Virus record (IMG/VR): IMGVR_UViG_3300034117_002447
Span: 62,001 to 126,000 of that record
Direction: 5' to 3' (one strand)
Length of the DNA: 64,000 bases
Shown here: positions 11,240-62,206 of the stretch, piece by piece
Layout: the number at the start of each line of letters is the position of its first letter
Position numbering within the stretch: the first letter of the stretch is position 1
Position numbers and translations under genes: made by a program
Notes under the pieces: generated by a model
What the model was told of the DNA's origin: nothing
Database searches by the model: none
What the model saw: the letters and a program-made list of their open reading frames with translations, nothing else

Positions 11240-11443
11240 TTATACCAAAATTGGCACGCTATTGTTAATAAGTTTCCAATTGAGTCCGTCAAATCCTTCC
11301 AGCTTAAACTCACTTGGTATTTTAAAAATATTAATTACCTCATTAAGTTTCTCATACCACTTACAGAAGCACACACCAGTCATGCCAGTCAACGGACATG
11401 AGTAAGTAATCCTATACTCCAGAAAGGACTCGGTTTTTATCAT
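11240..11443 (-). CDS. Hypothetical protein
   Basis: Coupled ORF. Confidence 0.45.
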   Translation of the reverse strand: MIKTESFLEYRITYSCPLTGMTGVCFCKWYEKLNEVINIFKIPSEFKLEGFDGLNWKLINNSVPILV

Positions 11444-11856
11444 AATTTAATTTGGAAACGATCCCTCATTGCTTGTACCTTATCTGCTGGTACTCCATGC
11501 ACGTTCTCTCCACCATGACGGTTCTCAACGATTAGAGAAACTACTCGGTAATCGTATTGTTTTGCAAGATCGAAGTATGCCTGCATCTCCCACTCTTGGG
11601 TGAATGTGTTTGAGACAACAATCTCTGGGTAAAATTGTGGATTCACCAGACTGTCTTTCATTCTGGTCTCGACCTGGGATCTACACCATTCATGTGCATC
11701 CTTCAGTTTAGTAACATCAAATTCGTATGCACCAGTTTCCTTGTTGTGAAAATACTTGTCAGCTTCGCAAACGGCATACTCATTCCATATTGAATTGGCA
11801 ACAGTTGATTTACCTGCACCAGGAACTCCACGTAGGAGAATTAAGACTCTATTCAT
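11440..11856 (-). CDS. P-loop kinase, AAA_33/polynucleotide-kinase-like
   Basis: LLRGVPGAGKST, VVSNTF, ENRHGGENVHGVP. Confidence 0.8.
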   Translation of the reverse strand: MNRVLILLRGVPGAGKSTVANSIWNEYAVCEADKYFHNKETGAYEFDVTKLKDAHEWCRSQVETRMKDSLVNPQFYPEIVVSNTFTQEWEMQAYFDLAKQYDYRVVSLIVENRHGGENVHGVPADKVQAMRDRFQIKL

Positions 11857-11857
11857 A

Positions 11858-12523
11858 TTAAGGTTTCTTTGTGATTACTTGATCTATAATTCCGTACTTA
11901 ACTGCCTCTTCAGCATTTAACCAGAAATCTCTGGTTGCATCCTTCTTTACTTGGTCAGCTTTCTTACCACAGTATTTACCAAGTAGAACGAAAAGTTCAT
12001 GATTGACTTTTTGCCATTCAGCCCAGTCAACTTCAGCATCCTGAATATTGCCGCTAAAACCGCCAGACGATTGGTGCAGCATTGTGGTTGAGTGTCTTAG
12101 GGAACTACGTTTGCCTTTTGTTCCTGCGCCCAATAGCACTGATCCCATCGATGCGGCCATGCCAGTATTTACGGTTCGGATATCGGCTTTGATATAGTCC
12201 ATTACGTCGACCATTGATAGACCAGACTTAACCGATCCTCCTGGAGAGTCAACGTGCATTGTGATATCTGAATTATCAACAGAATCTAGGAACATTAACT
12301 GAGCCTGTACAATAGTTGACATGTAGTCGTTTACTGGTCCAGCGACCCATAGAATACGATCCCTCATTAATCTGGAGAAAATATCCATTTGAGTAACTCG
12401 CATTTCACGTTCCTCTAAAATATAAGGAGTCATCGATGACTCAACTTGTTTACCGTAATAATCTAATTTCAATGAGGACACCCCGTGCTCGCTCATTGCG
12501 TACTTTTGAAATTCATTCATCAT
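11858..12523 (-). CDS. clpP: ATP-dependent Clp protease proteolytic subunit
   Basis: DIFSRLMRDRI, DSPGGSV, GMAASMGS, MLHQ, RDFWL. Confidence 0.95.
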   Translation of the reverse strand: MMNEFQKYAMSEHGVSSLKLDYYGKQVESSMTPYILEEREMRVTQMDIFSRLMRDRILWVAGPVNDYMSTIVQAQLMFLDSVDNSDITMHVDSPGGSVKSGLSMVDVMDYIKADIRTVNTGMAASMGSVLLGAGTKGKRSSLRHSTTMLHQSSGGFSGNIQDAEVDWAEWQKVNHELFVLLGKYCGKKADQVKKDATRDFWLNAEEAVKYGIIDQVITKKP

Positions 12524-12552
12524 GGTATTAATATACCAATATGAATAGACAA

Positions 12553-13422
12553 TTAGAAGTTATTAGTAGATGAATTATAGAAAACTAATCCGGTTACATT
12601 AGTCGTTTTAGTGATAGTCGGAGTTGAGTAGTTAAATGTTAGTACATCACCTCCACCGCGTTCGCCAAATTGAATTCGGACCGGATAATACGCGCCGGCC
12701 GTTAATGATGCTGTACCTGATGCTTCTACCGGCCCATGTAATCCACCATTATTAACCGTTGCATTTGTTGTAGTGAAACCGGTCTGAGCATTTGCACCTA
12801 TCCACATATACGATGCATCATCACTTGATGTGTAAAATGTATAAGTTTCAGTAGTAGCTGGTTTGAAATAACCTAACCATTGGCAACTAAAATCTGATCC
12901 ATCGTCTGTTCCCGGTTCAGTAATTACAGTAGTTTGTACTGAAGTAGCTGGATTTGCTCCGAATGTTTGAGGCGTTGCGGTTGCAAAGAAACTGACATTA
13001 TCTGCAAAATACCCAGAGTATGTAGTTTTATATAAACCTGCAACGTAAGGCTGAACCCATGAAGTCCAAAATCCATTTGAATTTAACCAAGTAAGAGCAG
13101 CCGATGCGCTAGCTAAATTAGGAGATCCTCCCAAGTCCCTCTTTAAATAATTCGCCAGGTCTAGAAAAGATTGATCGGTTTTAGCTGCACTTCTGGCAAA
13201 TCGAACTGTTCCGATTGCGCCTAATTGAGTTGGCTGATTACCTGCAGGTACAGGTCTACAAATTAAGTAACCGGTTGTATCTTCAGGTCCCATCCACCAA
13301 GTAACTCCGCCTGGCTGAGCTGAATAGTCTTGAGCAGACTCGCCTATTGCAAGATTTACTAAATTAGTAGCTCCTGAGATTGTAGCTTGCGATGGGTTGT
13401 ATGCAAATGGAGTAGTCGCCAT
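12553..13422 (-). CDS. PA14/GLEYA-domain protein (likely virion carbohydrate-binding)
   Basis: FSCQWLGYFKP, TYTFYTSSDDAS, NNGGLHG, YYPVRIQFGE; ATAAATAA motif upstream. Confidence 0.75.
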   Translation of the reverse strand: MATTPFAYNPSQATISGATNLVNLAIGESAQDYSAQPGGVTWWMGPEDTTGYLICRPVPAGNQPTQLGAIGTVRFARSAAKTDQSFLDLANYLKRDLGGSPNLASASAALTWLNSNGFWTSWVQPYVAGLYKTTYSGYFADNVSFFATATPQTFGANPATSVQTTVITEPGTDDGSDFSCQWLGYFKPATTETYTFYTSSDDASYMWIGANAQTGFTTTNATVNNGGLHGPVEASGTASLTAGAYYPVRIQFGERGGGDVLTFNYSTPTITKTTNVTGLVFYNSSTNNF

Positions 13423-13459
13423 CCAATTAATTATTTTGTGTTATTATTTATCTCACATA

Positions 13460-13483
13460 AAAAAACCGGCTGACGCCGGTTTT
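13460..13483 (-). terminator. Intrinsic terminator
   Basis: AAAACCGGC-GTCA-GCCGGTTTTTT on minus strand. Confidence 0.75.
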
Positions 13484-13509
13484 AATTATTAATGAATGGT
13501 GGTTTAAAA

Positions 13510-13960
13510 TCAAAAGAGTGCTGTGTCATCGCTGCTCTGTTCAGCTACACTCTTTTTATCTCCTCTTCCGGCAATTAAGTACCTTTCAATTCGATGTTTA
13601 TATAGTCAGAGTCTATAGTATCCCTTTGCCATATCCGCAAGACACGTTGCAGCGTAGTAACCATCCCGGCAAGGTTTATTGTACTGGGTAAAACATTTCC
13701 AATCAAGTAGTCATGGCTGCCTTTACTGTTCCTCACGCCTTTGTCCCAAACTCTACCCGCATAGTTACATGCTTTGGTCTTGCTGGTTGGGGTCAGCAAC
13801 CACTACTTCATAAAGACGCTAAATGAAATAGCTTGTATCGTTATTGGATGATTTGCCTCTGCAGGTAGTGTCACCCTTTACAACATAAACGTTACAAATG
13901 TTGGCCTTTTTGGAGTTTCGCGAAAAGTACTCATCGAAACTTTATTAACTAAAGTGCTAA
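13510..13960 (-). ncRNA. Candidate large (~450 nt) structured ncRNA
   Basis: No credible ORF; series of hairpins; followed by a terminator. Confidence 0.5.
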
Positions 13961-13972
13961 AAGTTAATGTCT

Positions 13973-14362
13973 TTAAACTGTCTCGTTTTCTCCTGCAAAA
14001 AAGTTCAGGATTGAACGGCTATTGCGTTGCTCATTTGATAAGCACTCAACTTGAATTTTCTTCTCTTGAATTTCTCTCTGTAAAGCGTCATGCTCTGATC
14101 GAAGGCCTGCTAATTCAGAATTGAACTTTGTACGCTCAATGAATTCAGCATCTCTTGCCTCTGCATTAGAGAAAGTTTTCTTTCCGTTTGCATCAACTTC
14201 AGAGTTAATTTCAACCTTGATTTTTGACTGGATATTGGAGATTAATTCGGTACTCTTGTTAGACTCAGTGTTTAGGTCTAAAATTTCCATTTGCAATTCT
14301 TGGATTGCTTGAGGCAATTCCATTAATCGTTCTACTGTGTTAGTTAAATTTGTATTTGTCAT
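13973..14362 (-). CDS. Coiled-coil hypothetical protein
   Basis: Heptad-rich; start moved to MTNTN. Confidence 0.65.
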   Translation of the reverse strand: MTNTNLTNTVERLMELPQAIQELQMEILDLNTESNKSTELISNIQSKIKVEINSEVDANGKKTFSNAEARDAEFIERTKFNSELAGLRSEHDALQREIQEKKIQVECLSNEQRNSRSILNFFAGENETV

Positions 14363-14446
14363 TTGTTTTAAATTAAGATACACTATTACTATACTATTAA
14401 AAATCGATTTAGGTTTAATCGGATGATAAAAAATCTAAAAAATTTG

Positions 14447-14520
14447 TGGACCATTCAGGGCTCGAACCTGAGACCTTCGCATTATGAGTGCGCTGCTCTA
14501 ACCAACTGAGCTAAAGGTCC
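14447..14520 (-). tRNA. tRNA-Ile2(CAT, lysidine type); Met not excluded
   Basis: GGACCTTTAGCTCAGTTGGTTAGAGC start typical of Ile2; loop CTCATAA. Confidence 0.8.
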
Positions 14521-15056: not shown

Positions 15057-15345
15057 ATAATTTGCTCCATACTGAGACTTGTACGAAGACTGGATTTTAA
15101 CGGGTTTCTCTGACTGTTTCGAGAACCATATCCCTTATTGACGTCTTAGACTATACGGTCCTCCCCCAATAAGTCTTTTTCATTAGTGTCTTACCACATA
15201 AAAACCTGTCAACTCTCTACGTCGGCGCGGCAGAGTCTTGCTCACGTTTACCCGAATCGATCCCCCATTAAGGTCGAGGACTTTTTCACTACCATCGCTT
15301 TTTTAAAGAATGCGACCAATCTTACTGAGTATCTCTTGCTCATAG

Positions 15346-15651: not shown

Positions 15652-15830
15652 AAGTGGGTGGGATCAGACGCGTTCTGCCCACCGGGACCTCGTCGTTAGA
15701 AAGTCTTGCGACTAACCAGAGCGTACCGAGACACTATCTAACTTCGACTTGAGGTAGTCACGGCCGCCTCTGATCCTCTCAAGTCTATTTCGTATCGTGG
15801 CAAAATGCGGCACGACCCTAATACGATGTG

Positions 15831-15986: not shown

Positions 15987-15990
15987 ATTT

Positions 15991-16130
15991 AAGAACAACG
16001 TTGGAGTACCCGTCTCGCTCCAATCTTAACAGCTTCATCAGAGTTTTCTCTGGGCCCAGGCTGAGGGTGGTGAACTCTTGATCCGACCGTGATTGTCGAC
16101 ATCACATTGGCCGGAGAGACCGTTGTTCTT
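15991..16130 (-). ncRNA. Structured inter-tRNA RNA with possible pseudoknot
   Basis: Perfect 10-bp closing stem AAGAACAACG/CGTTGTTCTT and three inner hairpins. Confidence 0.55.
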
Positions 16131-16132
16131 AG

Positions 16133-16204: not shown

Positions 16205-16209
16205 AAATA

Positions 16210-16391
16210 AAAGTATACCGTGCTCCGGTTTTTACTTATGGTTTGTTCCCCATAACCTGATACTGTGCACAGTAGAGCAGGGACCTGAACAGAGTACCTT
16301 GGGTCATTTATATCTCTCCGGTTGGGTAGCTAATCCCATGGAGCCAAGGTTCCTTTCATCCGTGCAAGTCGGACTTCTGTTGATATACTTT
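16210..16391 (-). ncRNA. Multibranch structured inter-tRNA RNA
   Basis: Closing stem AAAGTATA/TATACTTT with at least six nested helices. Confidence 0.55.
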
Positions 16392-16393
16392 CG

Positions 16394-16465: not shown

Positions 16466-16574
16466 ATTTCTCTCCAGTTCACTCCTACCCTGTGGGTATA
16501 CCGTGACGGGTTGTTTATCCATGCAAATCTACCTGAAGAGCGATTGGTTTGCGCTCGACGTGCATGGATCCGGG

Positions 16575-16680
16575 TGATTAGAGCCGGACTCGAACCGGAT
16601 ACCGTGCAAGACGGAGTAGACAACCTTACCTCTTTCGAGTTCGGGACTTGGGTACCATCCCGCATTACGCCCATCTAATC
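16575..16680 (-). ncRNA. tRNA-like RNA (GATTAGA acceptor) with non-canonical core
   Basis: 7-bp acceptor GATTAGA/TCTAATC, T arm CCGG-TTCGAGT-CCGG; core has other hairpins and no standard D or anticodon arm. Confidence 0.65.
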
Positions 16681-16685
16681 ATTAG

Positions 16686-22578: not shown

Positions 22579-23181
22579 ATGAATTACACAAAAGAAATGA
22601 TCGAGGCTGCAGTTAAGGCAAAGGGTTATGCTTGGTTCGAAGGGGCCAAAGACTATGACCTAAATCTAGTTGGGGTTAGAAATAACTCAGCGGCAATCGC
22701 AGATAAAGTTACTAATCTATTTGACGATTGGATGACTGCTTCTTATAAAGTTAACGGCGTATGGCAATTTAACTGCTGGCCAATAACTACTGATCCGGGT
22801 AAGAAAGCTATGCTTGAATATCACAATCCAAATGGAGTTGCTCGAGTAGTTCCAGGACAATATCGTGGAATGTGGGCGATTGGATTACACCAGGGCAAAT
22901 ACGAAGCACTAAGACAGGTTAAGCCAGTTAAAGTTTATCGTGATAAAAACAAAGACATGAAGTATGACGAAACAACAATTCAAGAAGGAATCTTTGGAAT
23001 TAACGGTCACCGCTCTAACCCAAAAACTCAATCTGAATACGTTGAAAACTGGTCCGAAGGTTGTCAAGTATTTAAAAAGGTTGCAGACTTTAATGCCTTA
23101 ATGAAACTTGCAAATCTAGCTAAAGCAATCCACGGAAATTCATTCACTTACACTCTATTGGAATCAACTGATATTGTTTAA
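22579..23181 (+). CDS. Putative cell-wall enzyme, YkuD/L,D-transpeptidase-like
   Basis: GINGHRS...WSEGCQV (H-x-S-x-GC pattern); beside the endolysin. Confidence 0.55.
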   Translation: MNYTKEMIEAAVKAKGYAWFEGAKDYDLNLVGVRNNSAAIADKVTNLFDDWMTASYKVNGVWQFNCWPITTDPGKKAMLEYHNPNGVARVVPGQYRGMWAIGLHQGKYEALRQVKPVKVYRDKNKDMKYDETTIQEGIFGINGHRSNPKTQSEYVENWSEGCQVFKKVADFNALMKLANLAKAIHGNSFTYTLLESTDIV

Positions 23182-49244: not shown

Positions 49245-49769
49245 TCATGTATTTGGGTTTATTCGTTTTTGTAAAAAATCCTTTGCCTTAAATAGCTGTG
49301 ATCTACTTGAGGCTTCTTGTATGTTAAGTTCCTTTGCAATTTCCCTATGGGAAAATCCGTCAATTACGTACATGTTAAAAACGGTACGATATCCAATCGG
49401 AAGAGTGCTAATCAGAGACATTAACTCTTCGGCTGATGCTGTTTCATAGTAAGTTGGATCTATACTGACTGCCTCCGCTGTTACTAAGTTACACTCATTA
49501 AACTCGTGCTTGTTCTGCTTGAGTTTAGTAAGCGCAGTATTCACGATGATTCGTCTCATCCACCCTTCAAAGGAACCTTCTCCTTTGAATTTCCCAAGAT
49601 TCTTGTATATTTTATAAAATCCTTCCATCAATACGTCTTCGGCTAACATAGGGTCTTTCATGTACCTCTTTGCGATAGTCATGAATTTACCAGCAAACTT
49701 ATCGAACAGGGTCTTTTGGTATTCTCTATTGTTTTCAATACAGCCTTGAATGAGTTGTTCGTATTCCAT
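49245..49769 (-). CDS. RNA polymerase sigma factor, ECF subfamily (Bacteroidota-like)
   Basis: AEDVLMEGF, GSFEGWMRRIIVN, LPIGYRTVFNMYVIDGFSHREIA; start moved to MEYEQ. Confidence 0.92.
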   Translation of the reverse strand: MEYEQLIQGCIENNREYQKTLFDKFAGKFMTIAKRYMKDPMLAEDVLMEGFYKIYKNLGKFKGEGSFEGWMRRIIVNTALTKLKQNKHEFNECNLVTAEAVSIDPTYYETASAEELMSLISTLPIGYRTVFNMYVIDGFSHREIAKELNIQEASSRSQLFKAKDFLQKRINPNT

Positions 49770-55359: not shown

Positions 55360-55485
55360 TAGTCAGGACAGGATTCGAACCTGTATGATAACTTATGAGC
55401 AGTCTTAACGGGTCTTTCGAGGTTACTCACGTTATCCTTACTATTAACCTTTATTCATGCGTCTAACCAATTCCGCCACCTGACT
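55360..55485 (-). ncRNA. tRNA-like RNA (AGTCAGG family, copy 3)
   Basis: Leu-type D arm GCGGAATTGGTTAGACGC; long GATAAC/GTTATC hairpin core; identical 3' 24-mer. Confidence 0.75.
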
Positions 55486-55559: not shown

Positions 55560-55650
55560 TAGTCAGGACAGGATTCGAACCTGTAAGTTTCCGATCGCAA
55601 CGATACCATATCCTATTTTTGGAGTCGAACCAACTTTAAGCCACCTGACT
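55560..55650 (-). ncRNA. tRNA-like RNA (AGTCAGG family, copy 4) with a second T-loop hairpin
   Basis: TTGG-TTCGACT-CCAA where the D arm should be; identical 3' 24-mer. Confidence 0.7.
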
Positions 55651-61936: not shown

Positions 61937-62206
61937 TTAGTGGTTTACGGGTTTATAGGTTGGATCTAATTCGTCAGCTAACTTCTTCAAGTCAGCGCAT
62001 TTCTCGAACTCTTCGTTCTTCTCAAAATGTTTTATCATAGTCCATATTGCTTGAGTCTTATCTTCAACTGGACTCTTATCATGTATTACATCTTTAAATT
62101 CTCCAGTCAAGGCTTCGTACAAGCGATTCATAAAGGCCGAGTAATCCGTCTGTCTTAGATGGATGAGGTCCAATAGAATCTTTGTATAATTATTTAAGTC
62201 TGACAT
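61937..62206 (-). CDS. Hypothetical protein (UVR-like C-terminus)
   Basis: FEKNEEFEKCADLK. Confidence 0.6.
   Translation of the reverse strand: MSDLNNYTKILLDLIHLRQTDYSAFMNRLYEALTGEFKDVIHDKSPVEDKTQAIWTMIKHFEKNEEFEKCADLKKLADELDPTYKPVNH

Follow-up and report, generated by a model that had tools for sequence, protein, structure and literature searches.

We report that positions 13505-13969 on the minus strand of a huge-phage genome fragment are probably a self-contained gene for a large, structured, trans-acting non-coding RNA, carried as an accessory cassette by a lineage of freshwater huge phages. We refer to this gene as RNA X and number it by position in the window, that is, the whole 64,000-nucleotide stretch of DNA that was analysed (positions 62,001 to 126,000 of the IMG/VR record IMGVR_UViG_3300034117_002447). 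A preliminary description of the window had proposed an orphan structured RNA of about 450 nt after a tRNA array, and this proposal is borne out by RNA contigs confined to the gap, by compensatory base changes among homologs and by the absence of any Rfam match.

The phage genome measures 270 kb, is judged complete and comes from a lake; the window corresponds to its bases 174116-238115. Because its head-maturation protease is closest to those of uncultured huge phages (630-640 kb) and Prevotella Lak phages, its host is probably a member of the Bacteroidota. Every gene around RNA X lies on the minus strand, in the order 19 tRNA genes, a 129-aa coiled-coil protein gene, a gap, a terminator and a gene for a PA14/GLEYA-domain protein. 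The gap of ~490 nt follows the coiled-coil stop codon (13973-13975) and ends, as had been noted, at the terminator (13483-13462), with the next gene starting from 13422; the terminator is kept in relatives both with and without an insert. The features of the locus are listed below in minus-strand order.

17404 down to 14446, minus strand: tRNA array of 19 clustered genes (ARAGORN, Rfam).
14446-14520, minus strand: tRNA-Met, final gene of the array (ARAGORN, Rfam).
13973-14362, minus strand: coiled-coil protein gene, 129 aa, the conserved last gene of the tRNA operon, adjoining RNA X upstream.
13505-13969, minus strand: RNA X, structured non-coding RNA gene of ~465 nt and a discrete cassette (span of homolog alignments A3/A4 and presence/absence boundaries).
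13561-13950, minus strand: core seen as RNA (metatranscriptome contigs; strand from structure).
13944-13968, minus strand: hairpin 1, arms 13968-13962 and 13950-13944 (same fold in all five homologs).
13915-13942, minus strand: hairpin 2, arms 13942-13936 and 13921-13915 (same architecture in all homologs).
13776-13905, minus strand: 5' domain (model R2; covariation test), including a 10-bp hairpin (13832-13823 / 13811-13802) and a second hairpin (13798-13794 / 13785-13781).
13625-13773, minus strand: central domain (model R1), a nearly invariant multi-helix junction plus a hairpin (13652-13647 / 13640-13635) with an invariant loop.
13575-13799, minus strand: 74-aa TTG open reading frame, a chance open frame and not a gene (codon changes, frameshifts, closed in the second clade of homologs).
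13506-13562, minus strand: long 3' terminal hairpin, followed by a U-rich run to ~13504 (kept in both clades; right cassette boundary).
13462-13483, minus strand: intrinsic terminator closing the tRNA operon and the variable slot, outside RNA X (9-bp stem, then a T run).
13422-12553, minus strand: PA14/GLEYA-domain protein gene, next gene downstream.

The preliminary description had allowed that the region might be untranscribed, and RNA contigs in four metatranscriptome runs show that it is transcribed. Fourteen DNA runs, taken from lakes between 2016 and 2024, contained the whole stretch, and ~0.3 of the sampled words of positions 13300-14450 were present in six metatranscriptome runs, each from a different study. 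Assembled contigs of four of these six runs (X15-X18) were mapped to positions 11400-14440, which end short of the tRNA array. X15 yielded a 386-nt contig (13565-13950) and X16 a 380-nt contig (13561-13940), both 100% identical to the window, and X17 yielded two contigs (13584-13674 and 13645-13949). In these three separate studies the contigs fell inside the gap only, with nothing else on the ~3-kb stretch and with zero depth over 2.1 kb of protein genes (11400-13560) and over the coiled-coil gene; DNA carry-over therefore offers no explanation for the signal. These RNA libraries contain RNA X but not the neighbouring protein genes. X18 provided an 835-nt contig (13589-14424, depth 107) from a 96%-identical variant with 36 differences, which starts 22 nt past the tRNA-Met gene and takes in the coiled-coil gene together with RNA X, fitting co-transcription of RNA X from the tRNA operon. 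These contigs mark a minimum extent, the ends of an RNA usually being under-covered, and they carry no strand, exact ends or quantitative level.

The 490 nt of the window occur only in four essentially identical records. Searches of phage-collection DNA with the gap, in near and distant modes, gave no match, and blastn, nhmmer and tblastn of the gap against ~100 related loci, five near-complete related genomes and its own genome returned only identical copies and the shared terminator. The annotated open reading frame P0002 led to L099, a 998-nt contig bearing a 91%-identical copy of the coiled-coil gene, RNA X and the terminator. A degenerate pattern that excluded the reference sequence retrieved L104, L105 and L106 from JGI metagenomes, and a scan of viral contigs retrieved L107. 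These four form a second clade (clade B), ~72% identical to the window over 13503-13916, in which L106 equals L104, and L107 and L105 are ~98% and ~85% identical to L104, respectively. The homolog set, spanning 72-96% identity to the window, comprises six distinct sequences in two clades with the X18 variant included, a size that limits the power of covariation analysis. Exact-pattern scans of viral contigs found only the four near-identical records and L107, and a pattern scan of 185,000 prokaryote genomes did not find RNA X. Wider searches relied on the two sub-domain models (R1 and R2) and exact patterns: R1 matched one of 50 related phage records, RNA X being absent from the other 49, and neither model found RNA X in three near-complete relatives. 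A protein search for further copies, baited with a spurious antisense reading frame, returned nothing.

Folded as a single sequence, the region is unexceptional. The minimum free energy of 13484-13972 gave z = -1.23 on the minus strand, with 11 of 100 shuffles folding as well, and z = +0.96 on the plus strand. This fold was rejected as a structure model because it lacks significance and because seven of its pairs are broken in the X18 variant, about as often as when the same substitutions are placed at random. All seven minus-strand hairpins listed in the preliminary description are in the sequence; they are not beyond chance alone, and it is the homolog comparison that makes them significant. 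The covariation check suggested at the same time gave a positive answer, helices being kept through compensatory changes in the homologs. Of the 126 pairs returned by RNAalifold on alignment A4, 25 had both of their sides changed. In a count over the six sequences, 549 of 557 cells were paired, and 14 pairs covaried versus 0-4 with partners shifted by one to three columns. Most telling is a comparison of near-identical strains: of the 11 positions within RNA X that distinguish L104 from L107, six form three compensated pairs.

In hairpins 1, 2, 4, 5 and 7 pairing persists although both sides have changed, the sequence of hairpin 3 does not vary among homologs, and the distant clade, as judged by eye, rebuilds hairpin 6 from another sequence. 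The stem of hairpin 1 differs among homologs (AUUAACU/AGUUAAU versus AAUUCGC/GCGAAUU) with the fold unchanged; hairpin 2 contains two fully compensated pairs between L104 and L107, and the 1-nt deletion of the X18 variant at 13923 falls in its loop. The 5' domain (13905-13776) is the best-supported part of RNA X, with pairing in 98.1% of cells and with both sides changed in 11 pairs versus 0-3 after sliding; its covariation score is 0.376 versus 0.03-0.10 after sliding, and none of 500 shuffles reached 0.376. In the central domain (13773-13625), 94.4% of cells are paired. In its helices 1-3, 18 of 21 pairs never vary and G-U pairs are invariant, so that these three helices and the long-range helices, having almost no variation to test, speak neither for nor against the fold. 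The hairpin at 13652-13647/13640-13635 has two pairs changed on both sides, a third changed from G-U to G-C, and an invariant loop; the window and the X18 variant differ by five changes in it, all of which keep pairing. The 3' terminal hairpin, conserved in both clades, has two covarying pairs. Several hairpin loops are invariant while their stems covary, as in the loop CGUGUC at 13646-13641. The trusted helices are those in the list above and not the whole single-sequence fold. Two candidate helices were rejected: a long-range helix between 13931-13921 and ~13590-13580, which appears in the single-sequence fold, is lost in clade B and incompatible with the covarying hairpin 2, and a candidate 5'-3' closing helix is not maintained in clade B according to a hand check of alignment A4.

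The structure also points to the minus strand as the RNA strand, since the alignment folds at -93 kcal/mol on the minus strand versus -64 kcal/mol on the plus strand, the structure conservation index is 0.74 versus 0.59, and G-U pairs, which would be A-C mismatches on the plus strand, account for 84 cells. Only the minus strand tolerates several of the one-sided changes (C-G to U-G, U-G to C-G). The 3' terminal hairpin and its U-run are likely the RNA's own 3' end or a stabiliser; a terminator scan did not flag this hairpin (13506-13562) because its stem has few G-C pairs. As hairpin 1 and the 3' hairpin fall outside the contigs, the mature RNA could be a shorter species of 13561-13950.

Relatives fetched via both flanking proteins reveal a variable slot that extends from the coiled-coil stop codon to the conserved terminator. 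The closest non-identical relatives (L088, L005-L007 and L010, with a 289-aa protein ~86% identical) have an 84-nt terminator spacer only. In L086 the slot holds a 173-aa sigma-like reading frame with a window homolog at ~49281-49739, and in L087 and L008 it holds three reading frames, one of them 62% identical to window 22579-23175; by tblastn, the RNA X gap has no similarity to the slot genes of relatives or to its own genome. The clade B slot contains, in order, the coiled-coil gene, a gene for a 541-aa Ro60/Rsr protein, a 106-nt tRNA-like element, RNA X and a suppressor tRNA, followed by a weak YrlA-like match, further tRNA-like pieces and the conserved terminator. Here tRNA-like genes flank RNA X on both sides, and its position and strand fit co-transcription with the tRNAs.

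The limits of the cassette come from comparison of L104 with the near-identical L117. The two have a 100% identical Ro60, the same tRNAs and near-identical flanks, and L117 lacks exactly RNA X. The left junction lies ~4 nt past the tRNA-like element, where hairpin 1 begins, and the right junction at the end of the U-run after the 3' hairpin; the cassette is therefore a unit of ~470 nt, from hairpin 1 to the terminal hairpin and U-run, corresponding to ~13969-13505 in the window. The preliminary description had placed the RNA correctly at 13510-13960 and had drawn it slightly short, the conserved unit running from ~13505 to 13969. The cassette leaves no room for a promoter of its own, and no convincing terminal inverted or direct repeats marking a transposon or MITE were found. 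Together, the relatives show that RNA X is a patchily distributed accessory cassette that is gained and lost as a unit.

The same comparison tells against the idea, raised in the preliminary description along with a check of linkage between the two, that the coiled-coil protein might be the partner of the RNA. The coiled-coil gene is present without RNA X in L005-L010 and L086-L091, and in clade B the Ro60 gene stands between the coiled-coil gene and RNA X. The coiled-coil gene is a constant feature of the site and does not co-vary with RNA X in relatives.

Several further elements were observed in and around the tRNA islands. The inter-tRNA spacers at 15057-15344, 15652-15829, 15987-16131, 16205-16392 and 16466-16684 measure 145-290 nt with a G+C content of 0.46-0.58, and at least one G+C-rich spacer contains an uncalled tRNA-like element. 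This conserved element of ~106 nt (16576-16681, minus strand) lies between the tRNA-Asp and tRNA-Met genes. It combines an acceptor stem (GAUUAGA/UCUAAUC) with a T-arm (CCGG-UUCGAGU-CCGG) and has no anticodon arm; it is called neither by ARAGORN nor by Rfam at the gathering score, and could represent a tRNA mimic. The copy at L104:2906-3010, directly 5' of the RNA X of L104, shares 87% identity with it, and further copies are present in L091 and L105. Suppressor-type tRNAs directly follow the RNA X position in L104 (3528-3600), L106 (1996-2068) and L117 (6950-7022), each with UCA, and in L105 (4076-4148) with UUA, and ARAGORN assigns a four-base anticodon (ttag) to a tRNA at L118:5835-5908; the suppressor-type tRNAs hint at stop-codon reassignment in those phages. 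Elsewhere in the window, 55360-55485 and 55560-55650 (both minus strand) give long Rfam tRNA matches (126 and 91 nt; 37 and 31 bits) with no ARAGORN call, and may be tRNAs that carry introns or are unusual in some other way. A 138-aa P-loop protein (11440-11856, minus strand), encoded three genes downstream of the RNA island, has a strong match to the PHROG 'ATPase' family (E = 8e-38) and weak matches to polynucleotide-kinase and RNA-ligase families; it may have an RNA-repair function.

The checks against known families proposed in the preliminary description (RNase P, tmRNA, GOLLD, ROOL and introns) gave no family match. Rfam 15 (4227 models, including GOLLD, ROOL, OLE, HEARO, raiA, introns and riboswitches) returned no RNA X match at the gathering score, and at E<=10 the intervals 13300-14500 and 13490-13985 gave no meaningful match, the latter returning only IS009 at 11 bits (E = 3.2); the L104 copy of RNA X likewise had no match. 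For ROOL (RF03087) there was no match at E<=10 in the whole 270-kb genome, in a search whose positive controls also gave no match, and GOLLD was covered by the all-family scans only. RNaseP_bact_a had no match in the genome at E<=10, with 11 of 14 control genomes positive, ARAGORN found no tmRNA in the window, and RNA X had no Rfam tmRNA match, in agreement with the earlier statement that neither tmRNA termini nor an RNase P signature is visible. Literature searches on structured RNAs in jumbo phages and on phage Ro60/Y-RNA systems found nothing resembling RNA X, which is no proof of novelty. We file RNA X as a new RNA class of the ROOL/GOLLD kind that is a member of no catalogued family.

Two other kinds of RNA share part of its setting. 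Phage T4 species 1 and 2 (rnaC/rnaD) are stable non-tRNA RNAs co-transcribed with a tRNA cluster and cut from the precursor. The position and strand of RNA X would fit an origin of this sort; the T4 RNAs are ~120-140 nt in length, compared with ~465 nt for RNA X. As with bacterial 3'-UTR-derived RNAs, RNA X in the window lineage starts a few nucleotides after a stop codon without its own promoter, and it is assembled from RNA libraries without the mRNA body; those RNAs, however, are mostly short antisense regulators of the Hfq type, whereas RNA X has a large multi-domain fold and in clade B lies between tRNA-like genes and not after a reading frame.

ROOL and GOLLD, which are phage-encoded, often near tRNA islands, abundant and dispensable, and have no known protein partner, are the closest in character. 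RNA X resembles them in being phage-borne beside a tRNA island, apparently abundant and dispensable, and patchy in occurrence, and in having many covarying helices over a length of several hundred nucleotides. Lake metagenomes were the first source of GOLLD, and RNA X also comes from lakes. The likeness in setting, the accessory nature of RNA X with no conserved protein neighbour, and invariant loops on covarying stems such as CGUGUC would suit a self-assembling, RNA-only particle of the ROOL/GOLLD type, in which homo-oligomers enclose or display other molecules. We nevertheless consider this specific form of RNA X unlikely, given that it has no detectable sequence or structure similarity to ROOL, GOLLD or any other Rfam model and that, at ~465 nt, it is smaller than both (~580 and >800 nt). 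No covarying palindromic loops like those of the GOLLD and OLE kissing-loop bridges were found in RNA X, only an invariant ACGU; this check is weak evidence.

The occurrence of RNA X just downstream of a TROVE and Ro60-vWA protein in L104, L105 and L106 raises another reading, in which it would be a very large partner RNA of Ro60, whether of Y-RNA type or as a substrate or regulator, and would serve RNA quality control or repair together with the phage or host Ro60/Rsr ring protein. Such Ro60/Rsr homologs (541 aa, with TROVE and Ro60-vWA domains both above Pfam cut-offs) were observed in the tRNA islands at L104:1110-2735, L105:4966-6591 and L117:5001-6623, and relatives of this protein are encoded on fifteen phage contigs, in most cases among tRNA arrays. 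At L104:3655-3778, downstream of the Ro60 gene, there is a weak YrlA-like match (33.7 bits) with pieces in the order T-arm, then D-arm. In clade B, RNA X resembles the Y RNAs (YrlA/Yrl with Ro60/Rsr) in adjoining a phage Ro60 gene and tRNA-like elements, a setting classic for Y RNAs, as well as the weak YrlA-like match, and phage Ro60 proteins are known to bind RNAs encoded beside them. Unlike Y RNAs, however, RNA X is three to four times larger and has no tRNA-like domain, no match to YrlA (RF02553) and no supported 5'-3' closing stem, and the GNCGAA(N0-1)G motif, present in L104 only among the aligned homologs (A4), is not conserved. Ro60 lies within ~4 kb of RNA X in clade B only (L104-L106); the complete genome of the window encodes no TROVE protein, L117 has the identical Ro60 without RNA X, and the 15 Ro60-bearing phage loci gave no match to model R1 or R2. 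Because each thus occurs without the other, RNA X and Ro60 are independent passengers of one RNA-gene island, and we regard a Ro60-dependent role as decidedly unlikely.

A cis-acting element, serving either as a structured 3' UTR in stabilising or terminating the tRNA/coiled-coil transcript or as a controlling leader of the PA14/GLEYA gene, could account for transcription together with the upstream gene, as in the X18 contig spanning both, and for the hairpin and U-run situated just before the operon terminator. We judge it very unlikely: close relatives manage with the 84-nt terminator spacer alone, clade B has other neighbours (a tRNA-like element upstream and a suppressor tRNA downstream), the terminator separates RNA X from the downstream gene, X15-X17 assemble RNA X without the upstream mRNA, and a conserved multi-domain fold of ~465 nt far exceeds what termination needs.

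RNA X is non-coding. Translation of the 74-aa TTG reading frame had been named as a challenge to the orphan-RNA reading, which survives this test. Between the X18 variant and the window, 11 of 11 changed codons of the frame are non-synonymous, often radically so, versus 7 of 12 synonymous changed codons in the adjoining coiled-coil gene; two single-base indels shift the frame in L099, and it is closed in L104, L105 and L107 of the distant clade. Across the five homologs no reading frame on either strand stays open throughout, and an antisense frame open in L104 and L105 is interrupted in L107; of its changed codons between L104 and L105, 4 are synonymous and 18 non-synonymous. When 1.84 billion representative proteins were searched exhaustively by phmmer, the 75-aa frame gave credible matches only to its own locus, P0001, and to P0002, the L099 copy; the weak matches P0003 and P0004 were treated as noise. 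An alternative genetic code was rejected, the in-frame stops being TAA, TAG and TAA and the tRNA array of the window having no suppressor tRNA. The idea that the gap is a small protein gene in this or another frame, a decayed pseudogene or junk is therefore implausible, even though relatives carry protein genes in the slot (the sigma-like frame of L086, the three frames of L087) and gene callers annotated reading frames here (P0001 and P0002), as no frame is conserved, tblastn finds no similarity to those slot genes, and junk would not give compensatory pair changes or stand out in RNA libraries.

For the preferred reading, a trans-acting RNA encoded by its own cassette, the following course can be proposed. 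Because the cassette starts ~4 nt after the coiled-coil stop codon in the window or after the tRNA-like element in clade B, with no promoter, RNA X would be transcribed by read-through as the tail of the tRNA-array operon. It would then be released by tRNA-processing or other endonucleases, with tRNA-like genes on both sides in clade B, or alternatively, in the window lineage, by decay of the upstream mRNA. Its own long hairpin with the U-run, or else the shared terminator 20 nt beyond, would define its 3' end, and its terminal hairpins would protect it. Since stems covary while long unpaired segments and loops are invariant, RNA X likely acts through a defined three-dimensional fold, by which it may sequester or scaffold a component of translation or RNA maintenance, be it a protein or an RNA and from the host or the phage, or may self-assemble; coding, cis-regulation and simple antisense pairing are unlikely.

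More tentatively, RNA X might found a new class of large phage RNAs that act by their own architecture, whether through catalysis as a ribozyme, through assembly of RNA alone, or as a high-affinity decoy that draws off a translation factor or an RNA-targeting defence of the host, and that travel as freely exchangeable promoter-less cassettes of huge-phage tRNA islands, a third class beside ROOL and GOLLD. Large folded RNAs with no known job are rare, and RNase P, group I and II introns, tmRNA, OLE, ROOL and GOLLD each revealed new biochemistry. RNA X is unusual among such candidates in being made in nature, in several lakes and an estuary, and in coming with natural knock-outs and exact gene boundaries. 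RNA X adds to a pattern in which phage tRNA islands are hot spots for accessory structured RNAs, including Y-like RNAs, suppressor tRNAs and tRNA mimics, a pattern that bears on how huge phages take over or protect translation and RNA metabolism.
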